Positions 39,301 to 54,278 of a stretch of 64,000 nucleotides of DNA are shown one piece after another. Origin of the DNA: Macrostomum hystrix (taxonomy: Eukaryota > Animalia > Platyhelminthes). Location of the stretch: NCBI GenBank assembly GCA_950097015.1, contig CATNEN010000003.1, forward strand, positions 13,640,001 to 13,704,000. The letters are read 5' to 3'. Below the pieces are notes generated by a model. That model did not search any database, had not been told where the DNA came from, and was given only the letters and a program-made list of their open reading frames with translations. The position numbers and the translations under genes are program-made. The stretch's first letter is position 1. Every line of letters begins with the position of its first letter.

Positions 39301-42300
39301 TTTTGCTACTTTCATATTTTCTTCAAGGTTTCCCATCCTTATCATTGCCTTTAATAACCCTTTTAATATTATTCCTAACTTCTACCGCTCTTCCTTTCTA
39401 CCCCTTCCTTTCTACCCTCTTCCTTTCTACCCTCTTCCTTTCTACCCTCTTCCTTTCTACCCCTCTTCCTTTCTACCCCTGTTCAATTCTACCCCTTTCC
39501 TTTCTAACCTTCATCCTTTCTACCCTCTTACTTTCTACCCTCTTCCTTTCTACCCTCTTCCTTTCTACCTCTCTTCTATCCTACCCTCTTCCTTTCTACC
39601 CCTTTTCAATTCTACCCCTTTCCTTTCTAACCTTCATCCTTTCTACCCTCTTACTTTCTACCCTCTTCCTTTCTACCCTCTTCCTTTCTACCTCTCTTCT
39701 ATCCTACCCCCTTCCTTTCTACCCAATTTCAATTCTACCCCTTTCCTTTCTAACCTTCATCCTTTCTACCCTCTTACTTTCTACCCTCTTCCTTTCTACA
39801 CTGTTCCTTACTACCCTCTTCCTTTCTACCCCTTTTCAATTCTACCCCTTTCCTTTCTACCATCTTCCTTTCTACTCCTCTTCCTTTCTACCCCTCTTCC
39901 ATTCTATTCTCTTCCTCTCTACCTTTCTTCTATTCTACCCCTCTTCCTTACTACTCTCTTCCTTTCTATCATCTTCCTTTCTACCCCTCTTCCTTTCTAC
40001 CCCTCTTCTTTTCTACCCCTGTTCTTTCTAACCTACTGCCTCTCTACCCATTTTTTTTCTTACCATCTTACTTGTTTCTCATTTTCCTTTCTACCCAGCT
40101 TGCTTTCTCCTTATTTTCCCTCACTTCTACCCCTAAAGATTTTTCTAATTTTCTAATTTCCTAAATATACCCTCACCATAGCTACTCATCTGCTTTACTA
40201 CTCGCTATCCATTTCTACCCTTCTCCTTTCTACCCCTCCTTCCGCCCAATCTTTATCCCAGTCAGTCGATACTTAAGCTGATACTTAAACCAAATCCCCG
40301 GTTGTCTGTTTGCGGCTCAGAAAACAGCAGCCAAAGTCAGAACACTGTCCTGACCCCCTCAGGACAGTGCTAGAGCCTGTTGATAAACGGTCTAGTCTTT
40401 GCGGCTGGAAATTCATGTCGACGGTTGAAGCAACTCGCGCTGCCTCGCGAAGAGATGAGAATGAGCAGTCAATCATAAGCCTAGTGATCTGCCTTCCGTT
40501 TTCTCTCACTCCCCATCCCGACCTTCATCTCCAATAAGCAGTGAAGAGGGTTGTCTTCCTTATTAGGATGGCATAGGGAGAAAAGTGGACGATAATCCTT
40601 TAGGCCTCGGGATTTTTCTGTAGTTCCCACTATAACTCTCCCCTGACTAGAAGCCCCCATTAGTAGTTATAATAGATGGCTAAATATAGTCGAGAGAATC
40701 TGAGCTTTTGCGGAAAGAATTGGTTGTCTCATTGATTGCTTAGTTTATTTCTATTTCTACTCCTCTCATCTTATTAGGCTGTTAATTGACTAGCTAATGA
40801 GCTATACTCATGTTGGCAATAATTACTTTCTTGATTAGGCGTATTGTTAATTTATTTGCTAATTTTATTCAATTAACCGTAACTTATGAGCACTTTCTCA
40901 TGTATTTTCATCGTAGCGATAAGTTTTTCTGATAATTCTCCTCCAGATCTCACATTTCTCATCTAGATGTCACATTTCTCATCTAGATCTCACATTTCTC
41001 ATCTAGATCTCACATTTCTCATCTAGATCTTACATTTCTCATCTAGATCTTACATTTCTCATACAGATCTCACATTTCTCATCTAGATCTCACATTTCTC
41101 ATCTAGATCTCACATTTCTCATCTAGATCTTACATTTCTCATCTAGATCTTACATTTCTCATACAGATCTCACATTTCTCATCTAGATCTCACATTTCTC
41201 ATCTAGATCTCATATTTCTCATCTAGATCTCAAATTTCTCATCTAGATCTCACATTTCTGATCTAGATCTTACATTTCTCATCTAGATCTCACATTTCTC
41301 ATCTAGATCTCACATTTCTCATCTAGATCTCACATTTCTCATCTAGATCTTACATTTCTCATCTAGATCTCACATTTCTCATCTAGATCTCACATTTCTC
41401 ATCCATCTCTCACATTTCTCATTCGGATCTCACATTTCTCATCCAGATCTCACATTTCTCATCTAGATCTCACATTTCTCATCTAGATCTCATATTTCTC
41501 ATCTAGATCTCACATTTCTGATCTAGATCTTACATTTCTCATCTAGATCTCACATTTCTCATTCGGATCTCACATTTCTCATCCAGATCTCACATTTCTC
41601 ATCTAGATCTCACATTTCTCATTCGGATCTCACATTTCTCATCCAGATCTCACATTTCTCATTCTGGCCTTAACTTTCTTATCTAGATTTTGTTCTAAAA
41701 AATCTCTAAATCTACTATATTTTTAATGTAAATTTTCTAACGGCCTAACAATCGGTCACAAAACAATTGCGTCAACTACAGCCCAGCGTTACTAAGCGCG
41801 CATTCGTAGCCAAGTACAGCTACGACCCGTTCGCCAATTCTCCCAATGATCGACCTGAGGATGAGCTAACCTTATCAGTTGGCGATTATGTCCTTGTTCA
41901 CGGAGATCGCGATCAGGTGAAATTTTATCTAGTCAATAACTATTCTGGTTGCGGTGTTTCTTGGAAAATCTTGTCTTTTCTAATTAACTTCAGGAAAAAA
42001 TCTTGGCTGAAGTATTTTTCGTTTGTAATAACATTTTTATCCTACTCTCAGTAGTGCAGTTTGTATAAAAAAACCTAGGTTTAAAAAACTCTAGTTTATT
42101 TTAAAGTGTCGGATTAATATCGGTTCTGAAAAGTTTCTTTTCAAATGTTGATAAGCTACTTTTTCTTTGATAATAGTTTGCTTGTAAGGTCTCATTTTTA
42201 ACTCTTGGTTTTTTAGAGACTTTGTTTGACTTGTGGTTAAACAGATTTCGTGTGAACTTATTTAAATAAATTGAATTAGCATTGCTACAATAATTCCATT

Positions 42301-45300
42301 TCTAGATCTGTTTTAAGATCCAAAAGAAATCACAAATTTCATAATCAACTTCCCCTTTTATAATCCTACACAGGATGGATACTATTATGGCGAAATGATG
42401 GATGGCAAGAGAGGATATATTCCATCAAACTATGTGGAACCTCTTCCGAGTAAGTGGGATCATTTTGATTTTGTTGCATTTCAAATTTCGAATTTGCGTT
42501 GTCTTTTAAATAAATTCACCTATTTTTTTATTTAAAATTCTGCATTTTACTCTGAATAAATTTCGTATTTCAGTATTTTAACAGTAAAATAGAAAATATA
42601 TGCGTGTACATCGATAGATCTCTAAATTAAATTAACTTTAAGATTGAAAGAAAATTTCCTTCCTATTTGCTTTCTAGATTTACCCTCTGATTGGCCATTT
42701 TAATTTTTCGTCGAAGTTTAATAATAATTTTTAATTTCTTAAATTTTACTCTATAGCTATCGATTGTTGGAGAACAAGCAGAAAAGCAATTTACTTACTT
42801 TCACTTTTTACAAACACAAAAATCGATACCCTGTACTTTTCCTTCTAAATCCGTTGCGAGATCTTATCTATAATTATGGTATTCAAACACCGGCGCACAC
42901 AACTATAAAGATAACAGACCCCCTTGGTTCAGACTGTCGTTTTTCTCGGTTAATTTCCACTTATACACGTTGTACTTTTATCCAATCATTGCGTCATTAA
43001 CGGTACTGATAAGAAACAAATTAAATATCGTTTGTTAGACACAGGCTCGCGTGGAAGGCGTTTCTCGAGTAAGACGGTTTACCTATTTTTATTGTCAAAC
43101 TTGAATATTTTTTTCTTTTGAATACAATATTTAGATTCTCTAATTGCTTTCGTTTCGAGATTATTTGCGGAGATGGGGCTAGAAAATATTTAGGAAACTT
43201 TGCCTTGCCAATTAACGCTTAAAATACAGTTCTTTTCCTTTCGTTTTTCTTAACGGTTTTAAAACAAATATCAAAGTCATTTTTTATTTTTTTAGTAATG
43301 TTTCCTTGTGCACCCTAAGTCGCTAAGCTTCTTGTATTTTTACTTCAAAATTATATTATAGACTTTTAACTGTAGATTATGGTTAAAAATAGAAAAACGT
43401 GTTATTCAGATAGCTACTCAGTTTTAGGTCGTTAGTTTTTATTAAGTTTGTTTCTATCGTTTTCGCGGAAATATGCGGCGCTAAAAGGCCATACCCACCA
43501 CCCCAATTTCCCCCACATAAATTCTAACTCTCTTTACAACCACCTCACGCCAAGACACGCCCACCACCTCATTTTCCTTTCCAAGTTAAATTCTAACTTT
43601 CTCCACAGCCACCTCACGCCAAGTCACACCCCCACCACCTCATTTTCCTTTCCAAGTTAAATTCTAACTTTCTCCACAGCCACCTCACGCCAAGTCACAC
43701 CCCCACCACCTCATTTTCCTTTCCAAGTTAAATTCTAACTTTCTCCACAGCCACCTCACGCCAAGTCACACCCCCACCACCTCATTTTCCTTTCCAAGTT
43801 AAATTCTAACTTTCTCCACAGTCACGTCACTCCAAGTCACACACCCACAACCCTATTTTCCTTCCCCAGTTCGATTTAAACGCCTCTCACAGCCGCTCAG
43901 TGCCCTATCTTTTTTATGTCCATTTGCCGTAAATCTTCCAACACATGTACGAGTTAATTACAACACCTTACCATATTAAAAACCATTTTATTTAGACGAT
44001 GATATCGCCGCGTTTGACGCCGGCTTTGCTAGCTCGGCTGGAATGTACGACTCCGGTCCGAATGCCTACCCAGTCGAGCAGCTGTCTATGGGCGGAACCT
44101 ACTCCTACGAAGAGGAGATCATTCGAGCAGAGGGCTTATCGGACGATACCGTCTCTCCGCCTAGATTCTTAACGCTTGAGCGTCAATTGGCTAGCTCGAT
44201 CGTGATTGGCTGGCGGCCGCCCGCTCACGATCCGACTAGTGTACTAATGCACGATCCTCTGTCAGCCTATCATGTCTACGTCGACGGTAAATTTAAATGT
44301 TCAGTCAATGCTGGCGAGAAGACTAAAGCATTGATTGAAGGCATCAATCCGAAGGAGAGGCACAGAATATGCGTACGATCCGTGACGACTCGCGGCCTGA
44401 CATCCAAGGATCCGGCTTGCACACTGCTCACTGGAAAAGATCGAGACTCGCACCTGGCTCCGACCTATCTGCAGGTGCGCTTGGGGATTACTGTTTAGAA
44501 ACTTTTTAGTTAGGATTTGGGATCTAGAATTAAGGTTTGGATTAAAGATTGAGGATCTTGAATTTAGATTTGGGTTATGGATTAGGGATCTAGAATTAAG
44601 GTTTGGATTAAAGATTTGGGATCTAGAATTAAGGTTTAGATTAAGGATTAGGGATCTAGAATTTAGGTTTGGATTAAGGATTTGGGATCTAGAATTTAGG
44701 TTTGGATTAAGGATTTGGGATCTAGAATTAAGGTTTGGATTAAAGATTTGGGATCTAGAATTAAGGTTTGGATTAAGGATTTGGGATCTAGAATTAAGGT
44801 TTGGATTAAAGATTTGGGATCTAGAATTTAGGTTTGGATTAAGGATTTGGGATCTAGAATTAAGGTTTGGATTAAAGATTTGGGATCTAGAATTAAGGTT
44901 TGGATTAAAGATTGAGGATCTAGAATTAAGGTTTGGATTAAGGATTTGGGATCTAGAATTAAGGTTTGGATTAAAGATTGAGGATCTAGAATTAAGGTTT
45001 GGATTAAGGATTTGGGATCTAGAATTAAGGTTTGGATTAAAGATTTGGGATCTAGAATTTAGGTTTGGATTAAGGATTTGGGATCTAGAATTAAGGTTTG
45101 GATTAAAGATTTGGGATCTAGAATTAAGGTTTGGATTAAAGATTGAGGATCTAGAATTAAGGTTTGGATTAAAGATTGAGGATCTAGAATTAAGGTTTGG
45201 ATTAAAGATTGAGGATCTAGAATTAAGGTTTGGATTAAAGATTGAGGATCTAGAATTAAGGTTTGGATTAAAGATTGAGGATCTAGAATTAAGGTTTGGA

Positions 45301-48300
45301 TTAAAGATTGAGGATCTTGAATTTAGATTTGGGTTATGGATTAGGGATCTAGAATTTAGATTTGGATTAAAGATTGAGGATCTAGAATTAAGGTTTGGAT
45401 TAAAGATTGAGGATCTTGAATTTAGATTTGGGTTATGGATTAGGGATCTAGAATTTAGATTTGGGTTATGGATTAGGGATCTAGAATTAAGGTTTGGATT
45501 AAAGATTTGGGATCTAGAATTAAGGTTTGGATTAAGGATTAGGGATCTAGAATTAAGGTTTGGATTAAAGATTAGGGATCTAGAATTAAGGTTTGGATTA
45601 AGGATTTGGGATCTAGAATTAAGGTTTGGATTAAAGATTTGGGATCTAGAATTAAGGTTTGGATTAAGGATTTGGGATCTAGAATTAAGCTTTGGATTAA
45701 AGATTTGGGATCTAGAATTAAGGTTTGGATTAAGGATTAGGGATCTAGAATTAAGGTTTGGATTAAAGATTTGGGATCTAGAATTAAGGTTTGGATTAAA
45801 GATTGAGGATCTTGAATTTTGATTTGGGTTAAGGATTTGGGATCTAGAATTAAGGTTTGGGTTATGGATTAGGGATCTAGAATTTAGGTTTGGATTATGG
45901 ATTAGGGATCTAGAATTTAGGTTTGGATTAAGGATTTGGGATCTAGAATTTAGATTTGGGTTAAGGATTAGGAATCTTAAATTGACGTGTAGATTAAGTG
46001 TTAGGGATATAGGGTTGAGGTTTGGATTAAAGATTGGGGATCTAGGATTAAGGCTAAATTCCTAAAGGAATTTAGGATTAGGGATCAAGATTATCTGTTT
46101 GGATTAAGGATCAAAAAGCGAGACAAAGATTTGAGTCTATTGGTCTCAAATCGAAATTAGTGTATTAAGTTAATATTTCTATATCTGTGATGTAAAATAT
46201 GTCATTTATGACCATTTCCAGTTGTCTAATGTCACACCTGGCTCAGCCGTGCTGATGTTCTTGCCAGCAGCGTCCAGTCTGCATCACGTTGTCACTGTCA
46301 ACGGCAAAGAGTACAAGCAGTGCCCGCCGGGTACCTACAAACTGCTCATCAGCGGCTTGACTCCCGACACTTTGTACAAGGTGAGGCCGCAAAATATCCC
46401 TATAATTGGGATAAAGTCCACAATTTTCACTGGAAAGGATATAATCCTCAAATCCCACATTGATTGGGATAAAATCTAATCTAACTTTTATTGGGATAAA
46501 ATCTAATCTAACTTTTATTGGGATAAAATCTAATCTAACTTTTATTGGGATAAAATCTAATCTAACTTTTATTGGGATAAAATCTAATCTAACTTCTATT
46601 GGGATAAAATCTAATCTAACTTCTATTGGGATAAAATCCAATCTAACTTTTATTAGGATAAAATCTAATCTAACTTTTATTGGGATAAAATCTAATCTAA
46701 CTTTTATTGGGATAAAATCTAATCTAACTTTTATTGGGATAAAATCTAATCTAACTTTTATTGGGATAAAATCTAATCTAACTTTTATTGGGATAAAATC
46801 TAATCTAACTTTTATTGGGATAAAATCTAATCTAACTTTTATTGGGATAAAATCTAATCTAACTTTTATTGGGATAAAATCTAATCTAACTTTTATTGGG
46901 ATAAAATCTAATCTAACTTTTATTGGGATAAAATCCAATCTAACTTTTATTGGGATAAAATCTAATCTAACTTTTATTGGGATAAAATCTAATCTAACTT
47001 CTATTGGGATAAAATCCAATCTAACTTTTATTAGGATAAAATCCAATCTAACTTTTATTGGGATAAAATCCTCAAATTCCAATTGAGATAAAAAAAATTA
47101 CAAGCAAGCAACCAAGCAAGCATTTCATTTTTAGTATTTGAGATAAAAATACTCTAGTCCCACTTCCTTAAGTCCTTAAGTCTCACCTTGATTAGAAGAA
47201 ATCCCTCAAATCCTACTCAGATTGGAATAGAAATCCTTAAATCCCACCTCGATTATGATAGAAATCCTCTAATCCCACCTCGATTAGGATAGAAATCCTC
47301 TAATCCCACCTCGATTAGGATAGAAATCCTCAAATCCCACCTCGATTAGAATAGAAATCCTCAAATCCCACCTCGATTGGGATAGAAATCCTCAAATCCC
47401 ACCTCGATTGGCATTAGATCCTCAAATACCACCTTGATTGGGATAAAATCTTACAATCTAAAATTGATTGGGATAAAATCCTCCAGTCTAACCATGATTG
47501 GGATAAATCCTCCAATCATTATTTTTTTAAATCCCGAAAAAAGGTTTGCGTCCGCGCCCGCCCCCCGAAAGCAACTGGCACCTCTGTGCCTCTGCTGACT
47601 GCCACTGCGGAGTTCCGCACCACCCCGGGCGGCCTACCCGACGCTCCCCTGGACGTCCAGATTGAGCCTGGTCCGCAGGATCACTCCCTTCTTGTCACCT
47701 GGCTGCCAGTCACCGTAGCCAATTCCGACGGCGTATCTAACGGCGTCCGAGTCACCGGCTACGCCGTCTACGCTGACGGCCGGCATCGGGTAACCGAATG
47801 TCTGGACGCCTACTCGGATCATTGCCTGCTAGCAAGGAACTCGCTGCCTCCGCACACCGCCTTCCTGACTGTGCGAACTGTCGGCACACACAATGGCCAA
47901 ACTGTGGAGAGTCTGGATTCTGATCCGCCCTGCTCGCTAACTTTGTCGGCCGCCAATTCGTCCATTGATTTGCCGCGACCGGAAGATGTAAGTTTTTACA
48001 TTAAGTTAGTAGCCGATATGTTGCGAAAAAAGTGTTTGAAACATTCTTTTTCATCTTGCAAAATTAAAAATCTAATTGAAAGAAAACATGTTTTTGCTTT
48101 AATTGGAATTACTTTAAAACATTTAATTTTCAGATCAAAATCACTTGCCGTAATTTTTGCCCAATCAATCGGGCCGATATGTATCGAAAACAATATATTA
48201 CAGTAAAATAAGCAGACGGTTAAAAGTTATTGTAAAAAAAAGAAAACCATAGAACACAACTAATTATGCTAATATTTTTGTCACAATAATGATCACAACT

Positions 48301-51300
48301 GCCTACTTGACGCTGTGAAGTAGTAAATATTGACGAATTGTAATATTTCTGTAAATATTACCACTTTGCTTGTCTTGGTGACGGTTAGAGGTCCTGAAAA
48401 ATTGCGAGCTGAGATTCACTGATGTTCCACCCTCCAAACCCCTATCATTCCAAATCCCAAAATGAACACAAAACAACAGCCGCGTCATCTTATGTCATAT
48501 GGAAAGCAGCAGCAGCAGCAGCTGTTATTGATGCAGCAACAAAGACTTTCCTCAGCTGGCAGGCCCTTAAATCTTGGTACAGCTAGCGGGGCGCCAGTCC
48601 ACAGCAGGTATGGCAGAGTAATATCTCCAACTGGCATGGGCTACCAAACTAGCTCACACCAGTATCAGCAGCACCAGCACCAGCAGCAGCACCAGCAGCA
48701 GCACCAGCAGCAGCACCAGCAGTTAATTCCTGGCGATACTAGCTTAGGAGCCGGTGCAGCTTCCATGTACGACAATTCTACCGGTTATCGACTGCCAGTG
48801 CAGGCATCTTTTGATGACTGGCAGCAGCAGCAGCAGCAGCCGCCACCGCCACCGCTGATGCAGCGGGATGACTGGAACCAATACGGCAGCCTTCGCCAGT
48901 CTCACCAGTTTCCGCATCATCGCTCCAGTAGGCGAAGTGCTGCCGCCGCCGCCGCTGCTTCAGCGGCTGCTACTGGCATGACGGATCATAGATTGATTCG
49001 TAGTCGGAGTGTTAGTCCGTCTAAGTTCCACCGCCTCAGGCGGCAGCACTTGTTGGCTGCGTCTCGAAATCCGAGGGTATTTTTTTATTTGTTGTATACA
49101 TTTTAGATGTGTGTGATATTTTCCTTATAGAAATTTTTATCGTGTTGTCGCTTTTACAAACGCACTACTGATTTGTTGTAAGTAGTCAATGAGTAGTACT
49201 TTTCACAGTTTTATTTGTGTCCTGCTTTAAAATAAATTTTCACACATGCGCTTTTTGCTTATTAAATTGTCGTGCACCCGTTTTTAGATCAACCACTCAA
49301 TATCATATTTTAGAGTAACACTGAACTCTAGAAAATCTTCTTAATGTCATACATAATTCAAACATCTCCATATTATATTTTAGCCAAGCACACCACAGCC
49401 CGCAGAGGCCAAACTCAGACCCCTATACATAATTTTCCTGCCCTTATGTTTATCGACCCACGCCCACAACACCACAGACCGCACAGTGGCAGTTTCCTGC
49501 CCTAATGTTTATCGACCCACGCCCACCACCCCACAGACCGCACAAAAGCTGTTTCCTGCCCTAATGTTTATCGACCCACGCCCACCACCCCACAGACCGC
49601 ACAGTGGCCGTTTCCTGCCCTAATGTTTATCGACCCACGCCCACCACCCCACAGACCGCACAGTGGCCGTTTCCTGCCCTAATGTTTATCGACACACGCC
49701 CACCACCCCACAGACCGCACAGTGGCCGTTTCCTGCCCTAATGTTTATCGACCCACGCCCACCACCCCACAGACCGCACAGTGGCCGTTTCCTGCCCTAA
49801 TGTTTATCGACCTACGCCCACCACCCCACAGACCGCACAGTGGCCGTTTCCTGCCCTAATGTTTATCGACCCACGCCCACCACCCCACAGACCGCACAAA
49901 AGCCGTTTCCTGCCCTAATGTTTATCGACCCACGCCCACCACCCCACAGACCGCACAAAAGCCGTTTCCTGCCCTAATGTTTATCAACCCACGCCCACCA
50001 CCCCACAGACCGCACAGTGGCCGTTTCCTGCCCTAATGTTTATCGACCCACGCCCACCACCCCACAGACCGCACAGTGGCCGTTTCCTGCCCTAATGTTC
50101 ATCGACCCACGCCCATCACCCCACACAAAGAGGCGAAATGAAATCCCCTACCTATAATTTTCCCGACCTAACGTTCATCGACCGACACCAACCTAAAAAG
50201 TACATCAACCATGCCACTAGCCACTTTATTACTATCGTTAAATTTCTTTGTTGACCAGTAACTATCAATTAACAATATTTAACTAAATCAACTAAAATAT
50301 TGTAATTAGTAAAGTACAGAAAATATTCGCGCAAACTTCTGACCACTCTGAACGCAACACGTCAGGCTATCGCCAACGAATTTGGCATCCTAGTAGACCC
50401 CACTACTGGACTACCTTTGCGAACGGCGCACGGTGAATTCCGAGCTCCACCGGACGGTGCTCCGATTATTTGTCGCATCGCGACTCGAACCTCGGACGGT
50501 CGCCTAGTTCCTGAGACCGGCGATAATGCGGCCACATTTGGCAGTGGAACCAGCGTCAACGCCAATGGTATTCTTGTCGACGAAGATGGCGTACCAATTC
50601 GTGGCATTAACGGCGAATTTTTCGGCTCAAACGGCCGGCCAGTTTATGGTAGTCGGGGCCCGGACGGTCAGTTGTTGGGCGATCCGGCGCCGGTTGTGAA
50701 CTGGTTCGGCGTGCTCGCCTACCCGGACTCGGGCCTTGCTGTCACTCGACCAGACGGCACCCTACTGGACGGCCAGGGCCAGCCCATTGTTTGCCGCCCG
50801 ATTGCACAGGGCACCGCGCCGCTGGACGCTGCGCCAGAAGCTGTGGCTAATGAACACGGCATCCTCACTGCCAACTCTGTTCCGTTGAGAGGTCCTCGTG
50901 GTGAATTCTTCGGACCAGACGGTCGACCAGCTCTGGGTGGTCTTCGCAATGCCTCTGATGGTCGTCTGTTAGAGTTTGAAACAGCGCCGAAGCTTAACTA
51001 TTTCGGAGTGCTAGTGTCTGAGTCGGATGGTCGGCCATTTTCCGGACCAACAGGTCGAGAACTTTTGGACGCCGGAGCGTGCGAGATCACCTGTCGTCGC
51101 GTTGAAGCGGCCAGCGACGTGCCTGACGCTGTTGCCAACGAGTTCGGCGTACTAGTCGACTCACAGGGCGCATCATTACGCGGCCCTAACGGGGAATTTT
51201 TCGGCGCCCCAGATGGGGCCATTGTCTTTGGCCGAAGGTTGCCAACGGGACAATTCGCCGACGAGAATGCCGGACTAGTGAATTATTACGGTGTGCTCTC

Positions 51301-54278
51301 TGAGTCCGGGCCAGATGGCCAACTCTTAGACGAGTCTGGACGACCTATCGAGTGTCGGCGAGCTCGACTAGACGAAGCTACTGGTCGATTGTTGAATGCG
51401 ACAACTGGAACTCCGCTGCCAACATCCGGTGTCAGCGTCAACGGCGTTTTATTGGACGAAGCAAATCGACCGATTCGCGGACCGGCCGGAGAATTCTTCG
51501 ACGCAGAATCGCGACCGGTGCATGGCGTTCGCAATCCCGATGGCAGCTTGAAAACTCCAGCTCAGGCCAACGAATTGGGCGTGCTTGTGAGCACTGAAAC
51601 CAACGAGACACTTCTAGGGCCTGATGGTCAGCTGCTCGATGCTGGTGGACGAGCTATTAATTGTCGACTAGTTCGCTTGTCTGACAATGGCGAGGAATTA
51701 ATTGATGTCAACGGTTATCAAGGCAGTGTTGAAGATCGGCGAGAAAATGAGTTTGGCATTCTAGTTGACGCGTCTAGCGGAGCTCCACTGCGAGACGCAC
51801 AGGGTCGCTACTTCGATGCCAGATGTCGACCAGTTTGTGGTGCTCCCCGAGATCCTGTCACAGGCAAACTCTTAGCTAACAAGGCCGGTTGGCGAGTGAA
51901 CGAGTTTGGCGTTCTGGAAGGTGACAACACCGGCGAAGCAATTAGGGCACCTTCTGGTGAGCTTTTAGACTCGATGGGTCGCACCATTGATGAAGCAGCT
52001 GAGGGTAGGCAGCGCGGACCGCGAGGTGAGCCGCTACCTACGCCCGAAGAGGAGGCTGCCGCTGCCGCCGCTGCCGTCGCTGCTGCAGCTGCTGCCGCTG
52101 AAGCCGCCGCTGCTGAGGCTGCAGCAGCAGCAGAGGCAGCAGCTGCTGAGGCTGCGGCAGCAGCAGAAGCCGCCGCTGCTGAGGCTGCAGCGGAAGCTGA
52201 AGGTCCAGCCGTTGAAGGTGAAGCCGTAACTGCTGAAGGCGCACCAGAGGAGGGCGTTGCCACAGAAGCGGCAACGGGAGAAGCTGGCGCCGAGGGCGGC
52301 GACCCACCAGACGATAGCTTCCTCGGCCGGTTAAAGAAAGGCTTTCACGAGTTCCAAGAAAAGGTGGAAGAAATCGCCGAGGAGACCGGAGACAAGATGC
52401 GCGAAATGAATGAAGAAAATCAGAAGAAATTCGAAGCATTCAACGAAGATACAAAGAAAAAGTTTGACGCATTTGGCGGCGATACTAAGAAACGATTTGA
52501 AGCTTTCGGCGAAGGCACGGCTAGCATGTTCAAGAAGCTAGATCCCAAGAATCTTGGAGGCGGAGGCGACGGCTCCAGCTGAATATGATTGGGCCGGTCT
52601 GCATTTTCAGTTTTCTATTTCAATAATCATGTGGAATTTGGATTGCTTGCTGGTTTTCTGGTGTGGTCTCGGTGTTATTTTGCTATTTTACTATCTTCCT
52701 ATCAATTTGTATTTCCTTTATTATTTGATGTTGTCTATCAGCATGCGAGAATAAAATGCAGATATCGAGTTGATTTAATACATTTTTACCTATCTAATCT
52801 AGATGCACATAATTTTGCAGGTTGGCAAATCTCCAACTGAAGATTATCGCGCTTATCGACAAGGTCACAAAAGATTGTCAAAAAATGTTTCAGTGCCTGA
52901 AATTCGTAAGTTTTTGTCTTTGTACCTTAAAGTATCGAACAAACAGCAGTGGTACAGCTTGACTCACCATTGAATAATATATTAACAGACGTCACCAACG
53001 AAGATCTACCCTATTCTGACGAAGAAGAGGAAGAGTTTATGCCGGAGGATGACGAAATAATCAGCGACGATGTCACCCACCCCTACGACAGCGGCCGTCG
53101 AGGTCCCAACGCCTCCGCCGCCTGGGAACGCGATCGGGATCGTTACCGCGATCGGGATCGGGATCGAGGCTCAAGAGACCCCAGAGATCGCGACAGGCAT
53201 CATCACTACGGCAGGCACGCGAACAGTTCCGCAGATCCCTACCATAGACAACAGACCAGACAGTCTTCGGCGGGCGCCGGCGGCTCAAGAAGTCGCAGGC
53301 AGAGCGGTCATCGCTCGGACTCCCCACCGCCGCCTCCGCCGCCACCGACCCACTCGGGTTCTTCTGGTCACAATCTGCAGCAGCAGCAGACTGGGGGTAG
53401 GGAGCGCGGAAGCAGGCAAAGAAGGCAGCAGCAGCAACAGCAGCAGCAGCAGCAGGAATCGTCGTTTGAATTGCCTGAATCTGAGCCTCAGCAGCAGCAG
53501 CAGCAGCAACAACAGCAGCAGCAACGAATGTCTGCCGCTGCTGCTAACTCGGGGCCAGCTAGAATATTTGTCGCCTTATTTGACTATGACCCGGCCACAA
53601 TGAGTCCAAATCCAGACGCCATCGTTGAGGAACTACCATTCAAGGTCATTTTCTTCCTTTTATAATTTTTTTAATTACGCGCTCGTAGATGACGAGGCAT
53701 TTGGTCTTGAAACTTGTTTTGTAACGAATTTTCTAATTCTCGCTTCCTTTTTCCAGGAGGGTCAGCTAATGAAAGTTTGGGGCGACAAAGATGAAGATGG
53801 CTTCTATCACGGAGAGTGCAATGGCCGAACCGGTCTAATCCCTTTCAACATGGTTAGTGAAGTGCAATTCGGTCAACTCGACGATCCGGGACAGCTGGAT
53901 CAGCTGCTGTCACAGCAGCAGCAGATTCCACAACAACAGCATCAGCTGACAGCTCAGCAACATCATCAGCAGATGCAACAGCAGCACCAGCAGCAGCAGC
54001 AGCAGCTAATGCAACAGCAGCAGCAACAGCAGCAGCAGCAACCCTCCTCTTCAACAGCTAACGGCACGGGTCCACTTCGCCGCTTAGTTGCACTCTACGA
54101 CTATGATCCCAAAGAGCTTAGCCCGAATGTTGACTCGGACATGGAGCTGAGCTTCGTAGCCGGCGACGTAGTCATAGCGCTTGGTCCAATGGACGACGAC
54201 GGCTTTTTGATGGGTCGATTAGAGCGCAACGGTGCCGAGGGTTTGGTGCCTAGCAACTTTCTCCAGGAGATGCCCTAA
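12374..54278 (+). CDS. RIMBP2: RIMS-binding protein (RIM-BP; RIMBP2/TSPOAP1 family), N-terminal coiled coil - SH3 - 3xFN3 - SH3 - SH3, ~1821 aa
   Basis: Phase-consistent GT-AG exons: 12374-13168, 19321-19428, 20146-20268, 20584-20712, 22560-22655, 24908-25048, 25155-25238, 25750-25839, 28106-28228, 29569-29673, 34576-34629, 35537-35759, 38753-38994, 41782-41916, 42374-42449, 43996-44474, 46222-46380, 47544-47987, 48480-49076, 52821-52905, 52989-53644, 53757-54278 (5466 nt). Family motifs: [20 protein letters not shown]; [19 protein letters not shown]; SH3-1 [19 protein letters not shown]; FN3 [19 protein letters not shown] and [35 protein letters not shown]; SH3-2 [20 protein letters not shown]; SH3-3 [24 protein letters not shown]. 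The start codon is the least certain element. Confidence 0.93.
13617..13877 (+). repeat. 5' LTR (261 bp)
   Basis: TG...CA; no difference from 17959-18219 found by eye. Confidence 0.97.
13881..13891 (+). promoter_or_regulatory. Primer-binding site complementary to the initiator tRNA-Met 3' end
   Basis: TGGTAGCAGAG lies 3 nt after the 5' LTR and complements ...CUCUGCUACCA of metazoan tRNAi-Met. Confidence 0.85.
13917..14741 (+). CDS. gag: Gag of the gypsy element, 274 aa
   Basis: [20 protein letters not shown]-terminal motif, LGDRRPTQL, and a C-terminal CxxH...C...C knuckle variant ([18 protein letters not shown]). Confidence 0.92.
14645..17824 (+). CDS. pol: Pol polyprotein (protease, RT, RNase H, integrase), in the -1 frame relative to gag
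   Basis: [10 protein letters not shown] (protease), [90 protein letters not shown]. Confidence 0.97.
17944..17954 (+). promoter_or_regulatory. Polypurine tract
   Basis: GGGAGGGGGGG immediately upstream of the 3' LTR. Confidence 0.85.
17959..18219 (+). repeat. 3' LTR (261 bp)
   Basis: Direct repeat of 13617-13877, followed by the TSD ACTT. Confidence 0.97.
19480..20125. repeat. 21-bp pyrimidine-rich intronic minisatellite (CTTCAGCATCTTCTCCCTCCC)
   Basis: Tandem array filling most of intron 19429-20145. Confidence 0.93.
20927..21905. mobile_element. Non-autonomous hAT (Charlie-type) DNA transposon/MITE with an internally expanded 16-bp minisatellite
   Basis: Imperfect TIRs CAGGGGTCAACAAACT / CAGGGGGCGGCAAACT, subterminal CCGGCCCG/GGCCCG motifs, and an 8-bp TSD GACTAGAC (20919-20926) / GACTAGGC (21906-21913) centred on CTAG. 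Confidence 0.85.
21020..21810. repeat. 16-bp minisatellite (CCCGTGTCTCATCTCT)
   Basis: Near-perfect tandem array inside the MITE. Confidence 0.96.
22073..22290. repeat. Unclassified dispersed repeat, copy 1 (homologous to 30637-30900)
   Basis: Shared blocks GAGATGATGCAGGCACATTCGGGTGACATGCTGATAAATTTTGAA, GGCCAGAACCATTGAATATCT.GACGGTCTGAAGAGCTGGC.ACTTGATTCTTGTTTCAGAA and GGGTGCAGCACAAAAAA. Confidence 0.85.
22728..23930. repeat. 15-bp intronic minisatellite (TGTCAGTTGATTTAG)
   Basis: Tandem array with variants. Confidence 0.95.
25380..25645. repeat. 35-bp intronic minisatellite (ATCAGATTCTTGTAAATATCCCATGCAGATTTGGG)
   Basis: About 7 tandem copies. Confidence 0.93.
26000..27930. repeat. 19-bp intronic minisatellite (GATAGGTCATAGGATTAGT changing to GATGAGTGACAGGATTAGT/G)
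   Basis: Long tandem array with two variant domains. Confidence 0.96.
28400..28800. repeat. 68-bp higher-order repeat made of four 17-bp variants
   Basis: ATCCCTAGATTAACGAA / ATCCTTAGATTAGCACA / ATCCCTAGATTAGAGAT / ATCCATTGATTAGCTAA repeated in the same order about 5 times. Confidence 0.9.
30247..30612 (-). mobile_element. tRNA-derived SINE, family 2, copy 1
   Basis: Minus-strand head TGGGGGTCGGTGGCAGAGCGGTTATCGCG...GTTCGATTCC (A and B boxes) and an (ATT)n tail. Colinear with 61369-61727. Confidence 0.9.
30637..30900. repeat. Unclassified dispersed repeat, copy 2 (homologous to 22073-22290)
   Basis: Shares the same sequence blocks as copy 1. Confidence 0.85.
31350..32090. repeat. ~20-bp minisatellite with alternating variants (CACTCTCACTCCAAGAGATT / CACTCTTTATCCAAAAAAGT)
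   Basis: Tandem array seen directly. Confidence 0.92.
32900..34200. repeat. 38-bp minisatellite (TCTGTCTTGTCCATCAGTCTGTCTGTCCGTATGTCTTT) decaying into shorter variants
   Basis: Tandem array seen directly. Confidence 0.93.
34810..35415. repeat. 23-bp minisatellite (ATCTAGGTCTCTGTATCAATCTC)
   Basis: Tandem array seen directly. Confidence 0.94.
35797..36110. repeat. 16-bp minisatellite (GACAGGTAGATAAGGT)
   Basis: Tandem array seen directly. Confidence 0.93.
36641..37870. repeat. 24-bp minisatellite (GACAGGTGTAAGACAGTTTTGAGT)
   Basis: Tandem array seen directly. Confidence 0.95.
38365..38640. repeat. 51-bp minisatellite
   Basis: TGTACATTCTGTATCCTAGCCAACCCCTCAGAATT... recurs at 38413, 38464 and 38515. 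Confidence 0.9.
39380..40030. repeat. 15-bp pyrimidine-rich minisatellite (CTCTTCCTTTCTACC)
   Basis: Tandem array seen directly. Confidence 0.9.
40945..41665. repeat. 20-bp minisatellite (ATCTAGATCTCACATTTCTC)
   Basis: Tandem array seen directly. Confidence 0.95.
43039..43068 (+). CDS. Candidate 30-nt symmetric cassette microexon of RIM-BP ([10 protein letters not shown])
   Basis: tttgttag|ACACAGGCTCGCGTGGAAGGCGTTTCTCGA|gtaaga. Phase 1-1 matches the flanking exons, it contains no stop, and it is a GC-rich island in an AT-rich intron. Confidence 0.6.
43520..43870. repeat. 71-bp minisatellite
   Basis: About 4-5 copies of CACCTCATTTTCCTTTCCAAGTTAAATTCTAACTTTCTCCACAGCC... Confidence 0.9.
44515..45980. 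repeat. 33-bp minisatellite (GGATCTAGAATTAAGGTTTGGATTAAAGATTTG)
   Basis: Tandem array seen directly. Confidence 0.95.
46463..47070. repeat. 27-bp minisatellite (ATTGGGATAAAATCTAATCTAACTTTT), followed by a related 31-bp array at ~47230-47450
   Basis: Tandem arrays seen directly. Confidence 0.95.
49435..50125. repeat. 59-bp minisatellite
   Basis: About 11 copies of CCTAATGTTTATCGACCCACGCCCACCACCCCACAGACCGCACAGTGGCCGTTTCCTGC. Confidence 0.95.
50366..52582 (+). CDS. Large in-frame alternative (probably terminal) exon within RIM-BP: 11 novel ~45-50 aa Gly/Pro/Asp-rich repeats, an Ala/Glu helix and an 11-mer amphipathic tail (738 aa)
   Basis: The acceptor cacgtcag|GCTATCGCC at 50365/50366 is phase 0, matching the donor at 49076. 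The frame is open for 2217 nt to TGA, there is no Met in the first ~535 codons, the repeats are conserved at protein level but diverged in DNA, and AATAAA follows at 52750-52755. Confidence 0.8.
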   Translation, partial: AIANEFGILVDPTTGLPLRTAHGEFRAPPDGAPIICRIATRTSDGRLVPETGDNAATFGSGTSVNANGILVDEDGVPIRGINGEFFGSNGRPVYGSRGPDGQLLGDPAPVVNWFGVLAYPDSGLAVTRPDGTLLDGQGQPIVCRPIAQGTAPLDAAPEAVANEHGILTANSVPLRGPRGEFFGPDGRPALGGLRNASDGRLLEFETAPKLNYFGVLVSESDGRPFSGPTGRELLDAGACEITCRRVEAASDVPDAVANEFGVLVDSQGASLRGPNGEFFGAPDGAIVFGRRLPTGQFADENAGLVNYYGVLSESGPDGQLLDESGRPIECRRARLDEATGRLLNATTGTPLPTSGVSVNGVLLDEANRPIRGPAGEFFDAESRPVHGVRNPDGSLKTPAQANELGVLVSTETNETLLGPDGQLLDAGGRAINCRLVRLSDNGEELIDVNGYQGSVEDRRENEFGILVDASSGAPLRDAQGRYFDARCRPVCGAPRDPVTGKLLANKAGWRVNEFGVLEGDNTGEAIRAPSGELLDSMGRTIDEAAEGRQRGPRGEPLPTPEEEAAAAAAAVAAAAAAAEAAAAEAAAAAEAAAAEAAAAAEAAAAEAAAEAEGPAVEGEAVTAEGAPEEGVATEAATGEAGAEGGDPPDDSFLGRLKKGFHEFQEKVEEIAEETGDKMREMNEENQKKFEAFNEDTKKKFDAFGGDTKKRFEAFGEGTASMFKKLDPKNLGGGGDGSS
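52750..52755 (+). promoter_or_regulatory. Candidate intronic polyadenylation signal for the alternative terminal exon
   Basis: AATAAA ~170 nt after the stop at 52582, following a U-rich UTR-like stretch. Confidence 0.5.

Follow-up and report, generated by a model that had tools for sequence, protein, structure and literature searches.

RIM-BP proteins are core organisers of neurotransmitter release sites, in which the C-terminal pair of SH3 domains couples calcium channels to RIM; within the family, SH3-II and SH3-III bind PxxP motifs of calcium channels and of RIM. The layout common to canonical RIM-BP, Rbp and RIMBP2 comprises SH3-I, three FN3 domains, SH3-II and SH3-III. Neuronal scaffold genes may also contain very long alternative exons, as is the case for the giant exons of ankyrins, and in flatworms the start codon of some genes is reportedly supplied by the AUG at the 3' end of a spliced leader (SL), an idea said to date from 2006. 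The present analysis concerns a 64,000-nucleotide stretch of the genome of Macrostomum hystrix, a free-living flatworm with SL trans-splicing (assembly GCA_950097015.1, contig CATNEN010000003.1, positions 13,640,001 to 13,704,000; hereafter the window, on contig C3), and within it a single long exon at 50366-52582, which is flanked, inside a RIM-BP gene, by the FN3 exons on one side and the SH3-II/III exons on the other. It is somewhat probable that this exon, referred to below as the module exon, is a genuine and selected terminal coding exon of M. hystrix RIM-BP, most likely an alternative last exon. What appears to be new here is the presence of an orphan protein module on an alternative or nested terminal exon of an active-zone scaffold gene.

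The identity of the host gene was established from its domains. An N-terminal SH3 domain, an FN3 array with an Ig_RIMBP2-type domain and two C-terminal SH3 domains were found, which are the features that define a RIM-BP, and the host gene shares the family layout described above. The tblastn search with P0001, a RIM-BP-like protein model from M. lignano, placed SH3-I at about 41800-42490 and FN3-1 together with FN3-2 at 44151-46410, and gave the order SH3-I, FN3-1, FN3-2, FN3-3, module tail, SH3-II and SH3-III along the window. The Pfam family Ig_RIMBP2 (PF25523) was matched at 47631-47939 with an E-value of 1.9e-30, and two further Pfam SH3 domains (SH3_2 and SH3_9) were located within 53625-54278. 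The canonical family differs from this locus in that the repeat domain described below does not occur in it, either in Pfam or in the searched protein collections, and the putative long form of the host protein would be devoid of SH3-II/III.

The open frame of the module exon extends from an in-frame stop at about 50303 through the TGA at 52580-52582. A CAG is found at 50363-50365 and GCT at 50366 is the first codon, whereas the first ATG codon corresponds to residue 537 of 738; a TTG at 50417 is a formal bacterial start only. The relevant junctions (47987, 49076, 50366 and 52821) are all in phase 0. Downstream, the acceptor TTGCAG|GTT at 52820|52821, also in phase 0, opens an exon whose GTAAGT donor is at 52903 and which continues into the frame of the SH3-II exon, and the hexamer at 52750 is the sole AATAAA or ATTAAA between the module stop and this exon. 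The previous sequence-only reading of this locus had claimed that the frame opens exactly at a phase-0 CAG acceptor, lacks an early methionine, ends with a TGA at 52582 and is followed by AATAAA at 52750; all of these elements are present in the sequence. Its statements that the donor at 49076 matches the module acceptor in phase 0 and that the canonical path from 49076 to 52821 is in phase 0 as well were likewise borne out by the junctions AGG|GTATTT at 49076|49077 and TTGCAG|GTT. A frame of 738 codons delimited in this manner is judged not to be a chance product.

Since the exon begins at a CAG acceptor and its first 536 codons include no ATG, its start codon has to come from upstream. An ATG-bearing mini-exon with a credible phase-0 donor was found in neither of the two paralog introns described below, which show no similarity to each other, and on the basis of this comparison a first exon of the module's own inside the intron was rejected. 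As the exon itself cannot initiate and the introns offer no credible ATG mini-exon, the start must be provided, as far as the sequence tells, either by the RIM-BP exons or by the spliced leader. At the other end, a phase-0 GT donor just before the stop was not found in either M. hystrix copy of the module, and therefore the module exon must be terminal in this species. The elements expected of an alternative last exon, namely a phase-matched acceptor, an open frame, its own stop and a poly(A) signal ahead of the next host exon, are all found in the window and also in the second copy.

Genome-wide searches covered the M. hystrix genome (220,453,370 bases in 42 contigs). A six-frame search revealed a second copy of the module at C38:27055664-27058090, an open exon of 808 codons that is 47.7% identical to the window exon and is also devoid of an ATG at its start. 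This copy opens with CAG|GCC GCT GCG AAC GAG (AAANEFG) and the window exon with CAG|GCT ATC GCC AAC GAA (AIANEFG); the two are similar from precisely the acceptor onwards, and upstream of it no resemblance is seen. An Ig_RIMBP2-type FN3 exon with a phase-0 donor (PYN|GTGAGT, C38:27054930) precedes the C38 copy by 733 nt, and about 350 nt past the stop of this copy a phase-0 acceptor leads to SH3-II and SH3-III exons. A poly(A) hexamer, ATTAAA, is present at L010:4121, ahead of this acceptor. Because the C38 module is flanked by FN3-3 and SH3-II/III exons, C38 is regarded as a second RIM-BP paralog carrying the module in the homologous intron. Neither the repeat-profile search nor the search with the tail alone found copies in the genome beyond those on C3 and C38, and the module is found at RIM-BP loci only, both times in the same intron and phase.

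A third multi-exon RIM-BP paralog, at C25:7633742-7638595 (L011), has a 3.4-kb intron at the same position, which contains low-complexity repeats only and no module. This paralog is the closest one to the window gene, with 70% identity in FN3-3 and about 61-71% in the SH3 region. The FN3-3 identities (70% for C3-C25, 51% for C3-C38 and 51% for C25-C38) result in the grouping ((C3,C25),C38). This grouping, along with the lack of the module in C25, indicates that the module is older than the split of the paralogs and that C25 has lost it. The divergence of the module is similar to that of its host (47.7% identity between C3 and C38, as compared with 51% for FN3-3). Among the aligned codons of C3 and C38 that specify the same amino acid, the codon itself is identical in only 123 of 331 (37%); the synonymous divergence (dS) of the module is saturated, and the nonsynonymous divergence (dN) amounts to 0.47 overall and 0.28 in the tail. 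The retention of amino acids despite saturated dS indicates that purifying selection acts on the module protein. Thus, of the earlier proposal that a RIM-BP alternative terminal exon is located here, the part that holds is that the exon is real, selected, terminal and tied to RIM-BP by a second copy in the same intron and phase; the choice between host splicing and an independent start is weighed below.

The module is composed of an acidic repeat domain, a linker and an amphipathic tail. Type B units of the repeat domain begin with N.FGVL, and the domain has a net charge of -28 with 0.7% Lys and 8.1% Arg; the tail, by contrast, is Lys-rich. Structure prediction covered sub-segments of the module. 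With an input alignment (A2) of eight double-pair repeat segments from both paralogs, AlphaFold2 predicted repeat residues 162-357 as a string of short beta strands with a mean pLDDT of 85.8 and a pTM of 0.73. The Foldseek search of this domain against the PDB gave nothing convincing (best E-value 3e-3, TM 0.18), VIA-align yielded zero chains with a Z of at least 2, either in a set of 48,161 representatives or in the top 970 of Foldseek, and Pfam gave no match at E <= 0.1. Similarly, no profile or structure match was obtained to known beta repeat folds, including beta-propellers, YD/RHS shells and glucan- or choline-binding hairpin solenoids. The predicted model suggests an extended, non-globular array, for which the absence of structure matches is no proof of a new fold. 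The repeat domain may be described as an orphan: AlphaFold folds it with high confidence, and yet it has neither a homologue in the 1.84 billion representative proteins nor a match among solved structures.

The last 88 residues of the module contain one predicted helix of 73 residues (pLDDT about 85), with a hydrophobic moment of up to 0.55, and constitute the best-conserved part of the module, with 59-61% identity between the window and C38. The tail resembles the 11-residue amphipathic lipid-binding helices of apolipoprotein A/E, alpha-synuclein, perilipin and LEA-3 in its periodicity and in a fixed Phe flanked by Lys. Its score against the Pfam Apolipoprotein family (PF01442) was 16.5 bits, below the cut-off of 90; the tail is therefore not a member of this family by sequence, and lipid binding may be proposed by analogy. 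The sequence-only description of an unrecognised module made of a repeat domain, a helix and an amphipathic tail agrees with these data, since no family library was matched and the three parts are seen in the predictions.

Relatives of the module were also sought in protein databases. Word-indexed searches with the open reading frames (ORFs) of the window and of C38 found no homologues, and the ESM Atlas gave no usable match to the module. A HMMER scan of the 1.84 billion representative proteins detected one real relative, P0001, which is the 987-residue RIM-BP-like model A0A1I8HA44 of M. lignano; the matches P0002, P0003 (a bacterial GPNGELLGPDGQPL repeat) and P0004 were rejected as low-complexity or chance. 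Besides A0A1I8HA44, there are two near-identical M. lignano models, A0A1I8GPP8 and A0A1I8G1P1. All three are named 'Fibronectin type-III domain-containing protein' and contain, in one frame, part of SH3-I, three FN3 domains, the acidic linker with the tail, SH3-II and SH3-III. Their identity to C38 is 87% in the tail, 59% (tblastn) or 63% (local alignment) in FN3-3 and 78% in SH3-II, and they are considered orthologues of the C38 paralog in which the linker and tail share the reading frame of the RIM-BP domains. Unlike the M. hystrix genes, these models have no beta-hairpin repeats, and the tail appears in them as an internal exon followed by SH3-II/III, whereas it is terminal in M. hystrix. 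That the tail serves as an internal cassette in M. hystrix too was rejected, since neither copy has a phase-0 GT donor ahead of its stop. In the public proteomes searched, that of M. lignano included, the repeat domain did not occur as a stand-alone protein, and the literature search revealed no publication dealing with Macrostomum RIM-BP or with an alternative last exon of RIM-BP. The previous statement that no RIM-BP with this architecture is known can consequently be kept for the repeats; for the tail it has to be qualified, as the tail is present in UniProt models of M. lignano between FN3-3 and SH3-II. It was also observed that P0001, P0005 and P0006, which come from duplicated M. lignano loci, share their first residue, which lies within SH3-I (DFFALRQ...), and lack a Met at the start. 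This shared start hints at a common truncated evidence transcript or at an internal trans-splice site.

If the module exon is an alternative last exon, the RIM-BP pre-mRNA would be processed in two ways. In the first, the phase-0 donor at 49076 or that at 47987 would be joined to the proximal acceptor at 50365|50366, the transcript would then be read for 738 codons to the TGA, and cleavage would take place after the AATAAA at 52750. In the second, the donor would be joined instead to the distal acceptor at 52820|52821 (TTGCAG), which would result in the canonical protein. The long form would retain SH3-I and the three FN3 domains, which make up the N-terminal half of RIM-BP, and would lack SH3-II/III; it would gain an acidic rod built from 11 beta-hairpin units, an Ala/Glu helix, a disordered acidic linker and a 73-residue amphipathic helix of lipid-binding type with 11-residue periodicity. 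The contacts of SH3-II/III with calcium channels and RIM would then probably be exchanged for a contact with membranes or vesicles, as far as the predicted structures allow such a function to be inferred. A comparable situation is known for the giant exons of neuronal scaffold genes such as giant ankyrin, where some of the transcripts likewise include a long coding exon that specifies a repetitive or extended module. Giant ankyrin exons are internal, whereas the module exon would end the transcript, at the expense of known interaction domains.

Several observations weigh against the assignment of the module exon to RIM-BP as an alternative last exon. The pyrimidine tract of the module acceptor at 50365|50366 is weak. 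The neighbouring introns are all in phase 0, so the phase of the host intron is weak evidence. The M. lignano proteomes searched do not include the long RIM-BP isoform either, and the M. lignano models, which are automatic annotations and may be predictor artefacts, contain the tail only, in an internal-exon arrangement for which M. hystrix has no matching phase-0 donor before the stop. Finally, an ATG-less start at a phase-0 acceptor fits equally well a start donated by the leader, which ends in ATG. In the latter case, the module would be an independent gene nested in the intron, whose intron-initiated or excised transcripts are trans-spliced to the 35-nt leader at 50365|50366, with the leader AUG as the initiator. 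The product would be a stand-alone cytosolic protein of 739 residues beginning with M-AIANEFG, and the C38 copy would begin with M-AAANEFG. Such a nested gene is a possible explanation, although its probability is clearly below even. Because the spliced leader ends in ATG, a stand-alone trans-spliced gene predicts the same sequence features as the alternative last exon does. The 35-nt spliced leader of M. lignano (PMC8629364) occurs unchanged and in many copies in the M. hystrix genome, where the search found 149 matches with <=3 mismatches, including exact copies in tandem arrays, as compared with 0 matches for the reversed control; its 3' end reads ...TTATTGCATG. Moreover, SL trans-splicing is common in M. 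hystrix, with about 20% of genes affected (PMC10468722). Both paralog exons begin with G (AUG|G) in phase 0 without an ATG of their own near the start, and the window exon has its own stop and AATAAA. In these respects, an ATG-less ORF at a phase-0 acceptor and a leader ending in ATG, the locus resembles flatworm genes with a leader-donated AUG. An intron-nested gene would also be duplicated together with its host, which would explain the shared position. The module ORF differs from those genes in being lineage-specific and in having phase-matched donors of the host gene upstream. These donors, on the same strand, lie 1.3 kb (C3) and 0.73 kb (C38) upstream, and the host transcripts should cis-splice into a working acceptor; trans-splicing needs an acceptor without an upstream cis donor (Conrad et al. 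1993, cited in PMC8629364), and cis-splicing would be expected at the module acceptor on host transcripts. The motif YTNCAG, found at 44% of M. lignano SL sites (PMC8629364), is matched by neither acceptor (CGTCAG in the window, TCACAG in C38). Lineage-specific genes are also under-represented among SL-spliced genes; the share computed from the figures of PMC8629364 is about 20% for those coding genes that lack a human homologue. The M. lignano proteomes, in addition, contain no stand-alone module protein, and the M. lignano models link the module tail to RIM-BP exons.

A further explanation, which is improbable, is that the module is served by an unrecognised upstream exon or promoter that does not belong to RIM-BP and lies outside the intron, or that a once-functional exon has come to be skipped always or nearly always. 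In favour of this, loss of the module from the C25 paralog had no obvious ill effect, and the M. lignano models are devoid of the repeat domain. Against this stand the two intact frames of 738 and 808 codons, retained since before the paralog split, the conservation of amino acids despite saturated synonymous sites, the 87% identity of the C38 tail between species, the high confidence with which AlphaFold folds the repeat from its own covariation, and the lack of a candidate mini-exon in the introns. Splicing of the module exon from RIM-BP and its use as a nested gene are, moreover, compatible with each other, as cis-splicing of the host into the exon could be accompanied by trans-splicing of intron-initiated transcripts. 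The module exon might thus also be expressed alone by means of a leader-donated start, so that one exon would belong to two transcription units.

In its widest form, the alternative last exon would mean that both Macrostomum RIM-BP paralogs make an isoform in which SH3-II/III are replaced by a beta-hairpin rod of a kind not seen before and a long membrane-binding amphipathic helix, tethering vesicles or membrane rather than channels; this proposal as a whole is tentative and rather unlikely. If true, an isoform that is kept in two paralogs and swaps the SH3 pair for a membrane module would represent a new route of active-zone diversification. For genomes with spliced leaders, the locus further offers a clean test of a general problem, since an ATG-less exon at a phase-0 acceptor within a same-strand intron can be either an alternative exon or a nested gene. 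RNA interference (RNAi), in situ hybridisation and transgenic tools are established in M. lignano, the model species of the genus. The coordinates of the features discussed are collected in the table below.

Table. Features of the RIM-BP locus around the module exon (window positions)
Feature	Position	Strand	Remarks
FN3-3 / Ig_RIMBP2 exon	47577..47987	+	donor GAT|GTAAGT at 47987|47988, phase 0; in frame with 50366 too
Gln-rich RIM-BP exon upstream	48480..49076	+	199 codons; both ends phase 0; donor AGG|GTATTT at 49076|49077
59-bp tandem repeat	49434..50125	.	11.7 copies, in RIM-BP intron
CAG acceptor of module exon	50363..50365	+	phase 0; homology with the C38 paralog starts exactly there
Module exon	50366..52582	+	738 codons + TGA; no ATG ahead of codon 537
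Repeat domain	50366..52000	+	11 alternating units of ~48 residues (residues 1-545); types A and B
Linker	52001..52315	+	Pro/Arg stretch, (A4-5E)n helix, acidic Gly/Glu/Ala-rich segment predicted to be disordered
Amphipathic tail	52316..52579	+	11-residue (33-nt) periodicity, xTKKKFxAFxx; predicted as one long helix
AATAAA	52750..52755	+	168 nt past the stop; ~65 nt ahead of the next RIM-BP acceptor
Next canonical RIM-BP exon	52821..52902	+	82 nt, read from sequence; leads to the SH3-II/III exons
SH3-II + SH3-III coding exons of RIM-BP	53555..54278	+	Pfam and RIM-BP model alignment

Some further observations were made on the signals surrounding the module exons. In both paralogs, a poly(A) hexamer precedes the next phase-0 acceptor by about 20-70 nt (window 52750-52821; L010:4121-4145), which is an operon-like spacing. 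The window acceptor at 52820|52821, TTGCAG, fits the YTNCAG motif of SL sites, and an SL AUG joined there would be in frame; a stand-alone SH3-II/III protein produced by means of the SL at 52821 is therefore conceivable. The exact leader copies are arranged in tandem arrays, mostly about 11.6-11.7 kb apart, at C17:2765-120870, C15:9730-33054, C42:14534-73863 and C39:12667884-12685526. On C39, copies of a variant leader (...CTCTCTTTTTTGCATG) recur every 927 nt in an array, and many dispersed SL-like copies end in ATA, not ATG.

Other loci with similarity to the module or to RIM-BP were also noted in the genome. The C5 matches of the genome search were rejected as relatives of the module, as they belong to an unrelated ESDGT(P/L)II tandem repeat. 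The corresponding frame at C5:4710053-4711387 (L005) is open for 514 codons and consists entirely of 8-residue ESDGT(P/L)II repeats, and the opposite strand is open too; it represents a coding-looking satellite unrelated to the module. On the minus strand of C8:3955500-3962000 (L021), C15:1062000-1068000 (L022) and C39:11788000-11795000 (L023), three frames that are apparently intronless and open over 979-1257 codons specify a long coiled coil, a single Ig_RIMBP2-like domain and a single SH3 domain at the C-terminus; they are RIM-BP-related with a different architecture. The possibility that these matches are retrocopies that would show mRNA isoforms was rejected because of this architecture, and they are uninformative on the splice.

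The introns upstream of the two module copies contain additional elements. The 59-bp tandem repeat of the window (49434-50125; 96% matching) ends 240 nt upstream of the module acceptor and has no counterpart in the C38 intron. In the C38 intron, 15-22 nt upstream of the module acceptor, TATAAAAA is found at L010:1343-1350; its presence is probably due to chance, because it is too close to be the promoter of a transcript containing the acceptor. Upstream of the C38 paralog exon, the intron also contains a tRNA-like stretch on the minus strand (L009:9480-9580), in which ARAGORN called no tRNA; it includes GGTTCGATTC, a T-arm-like motif, and may be a fragment of a tRNA-derived short interspersed element (SINE).

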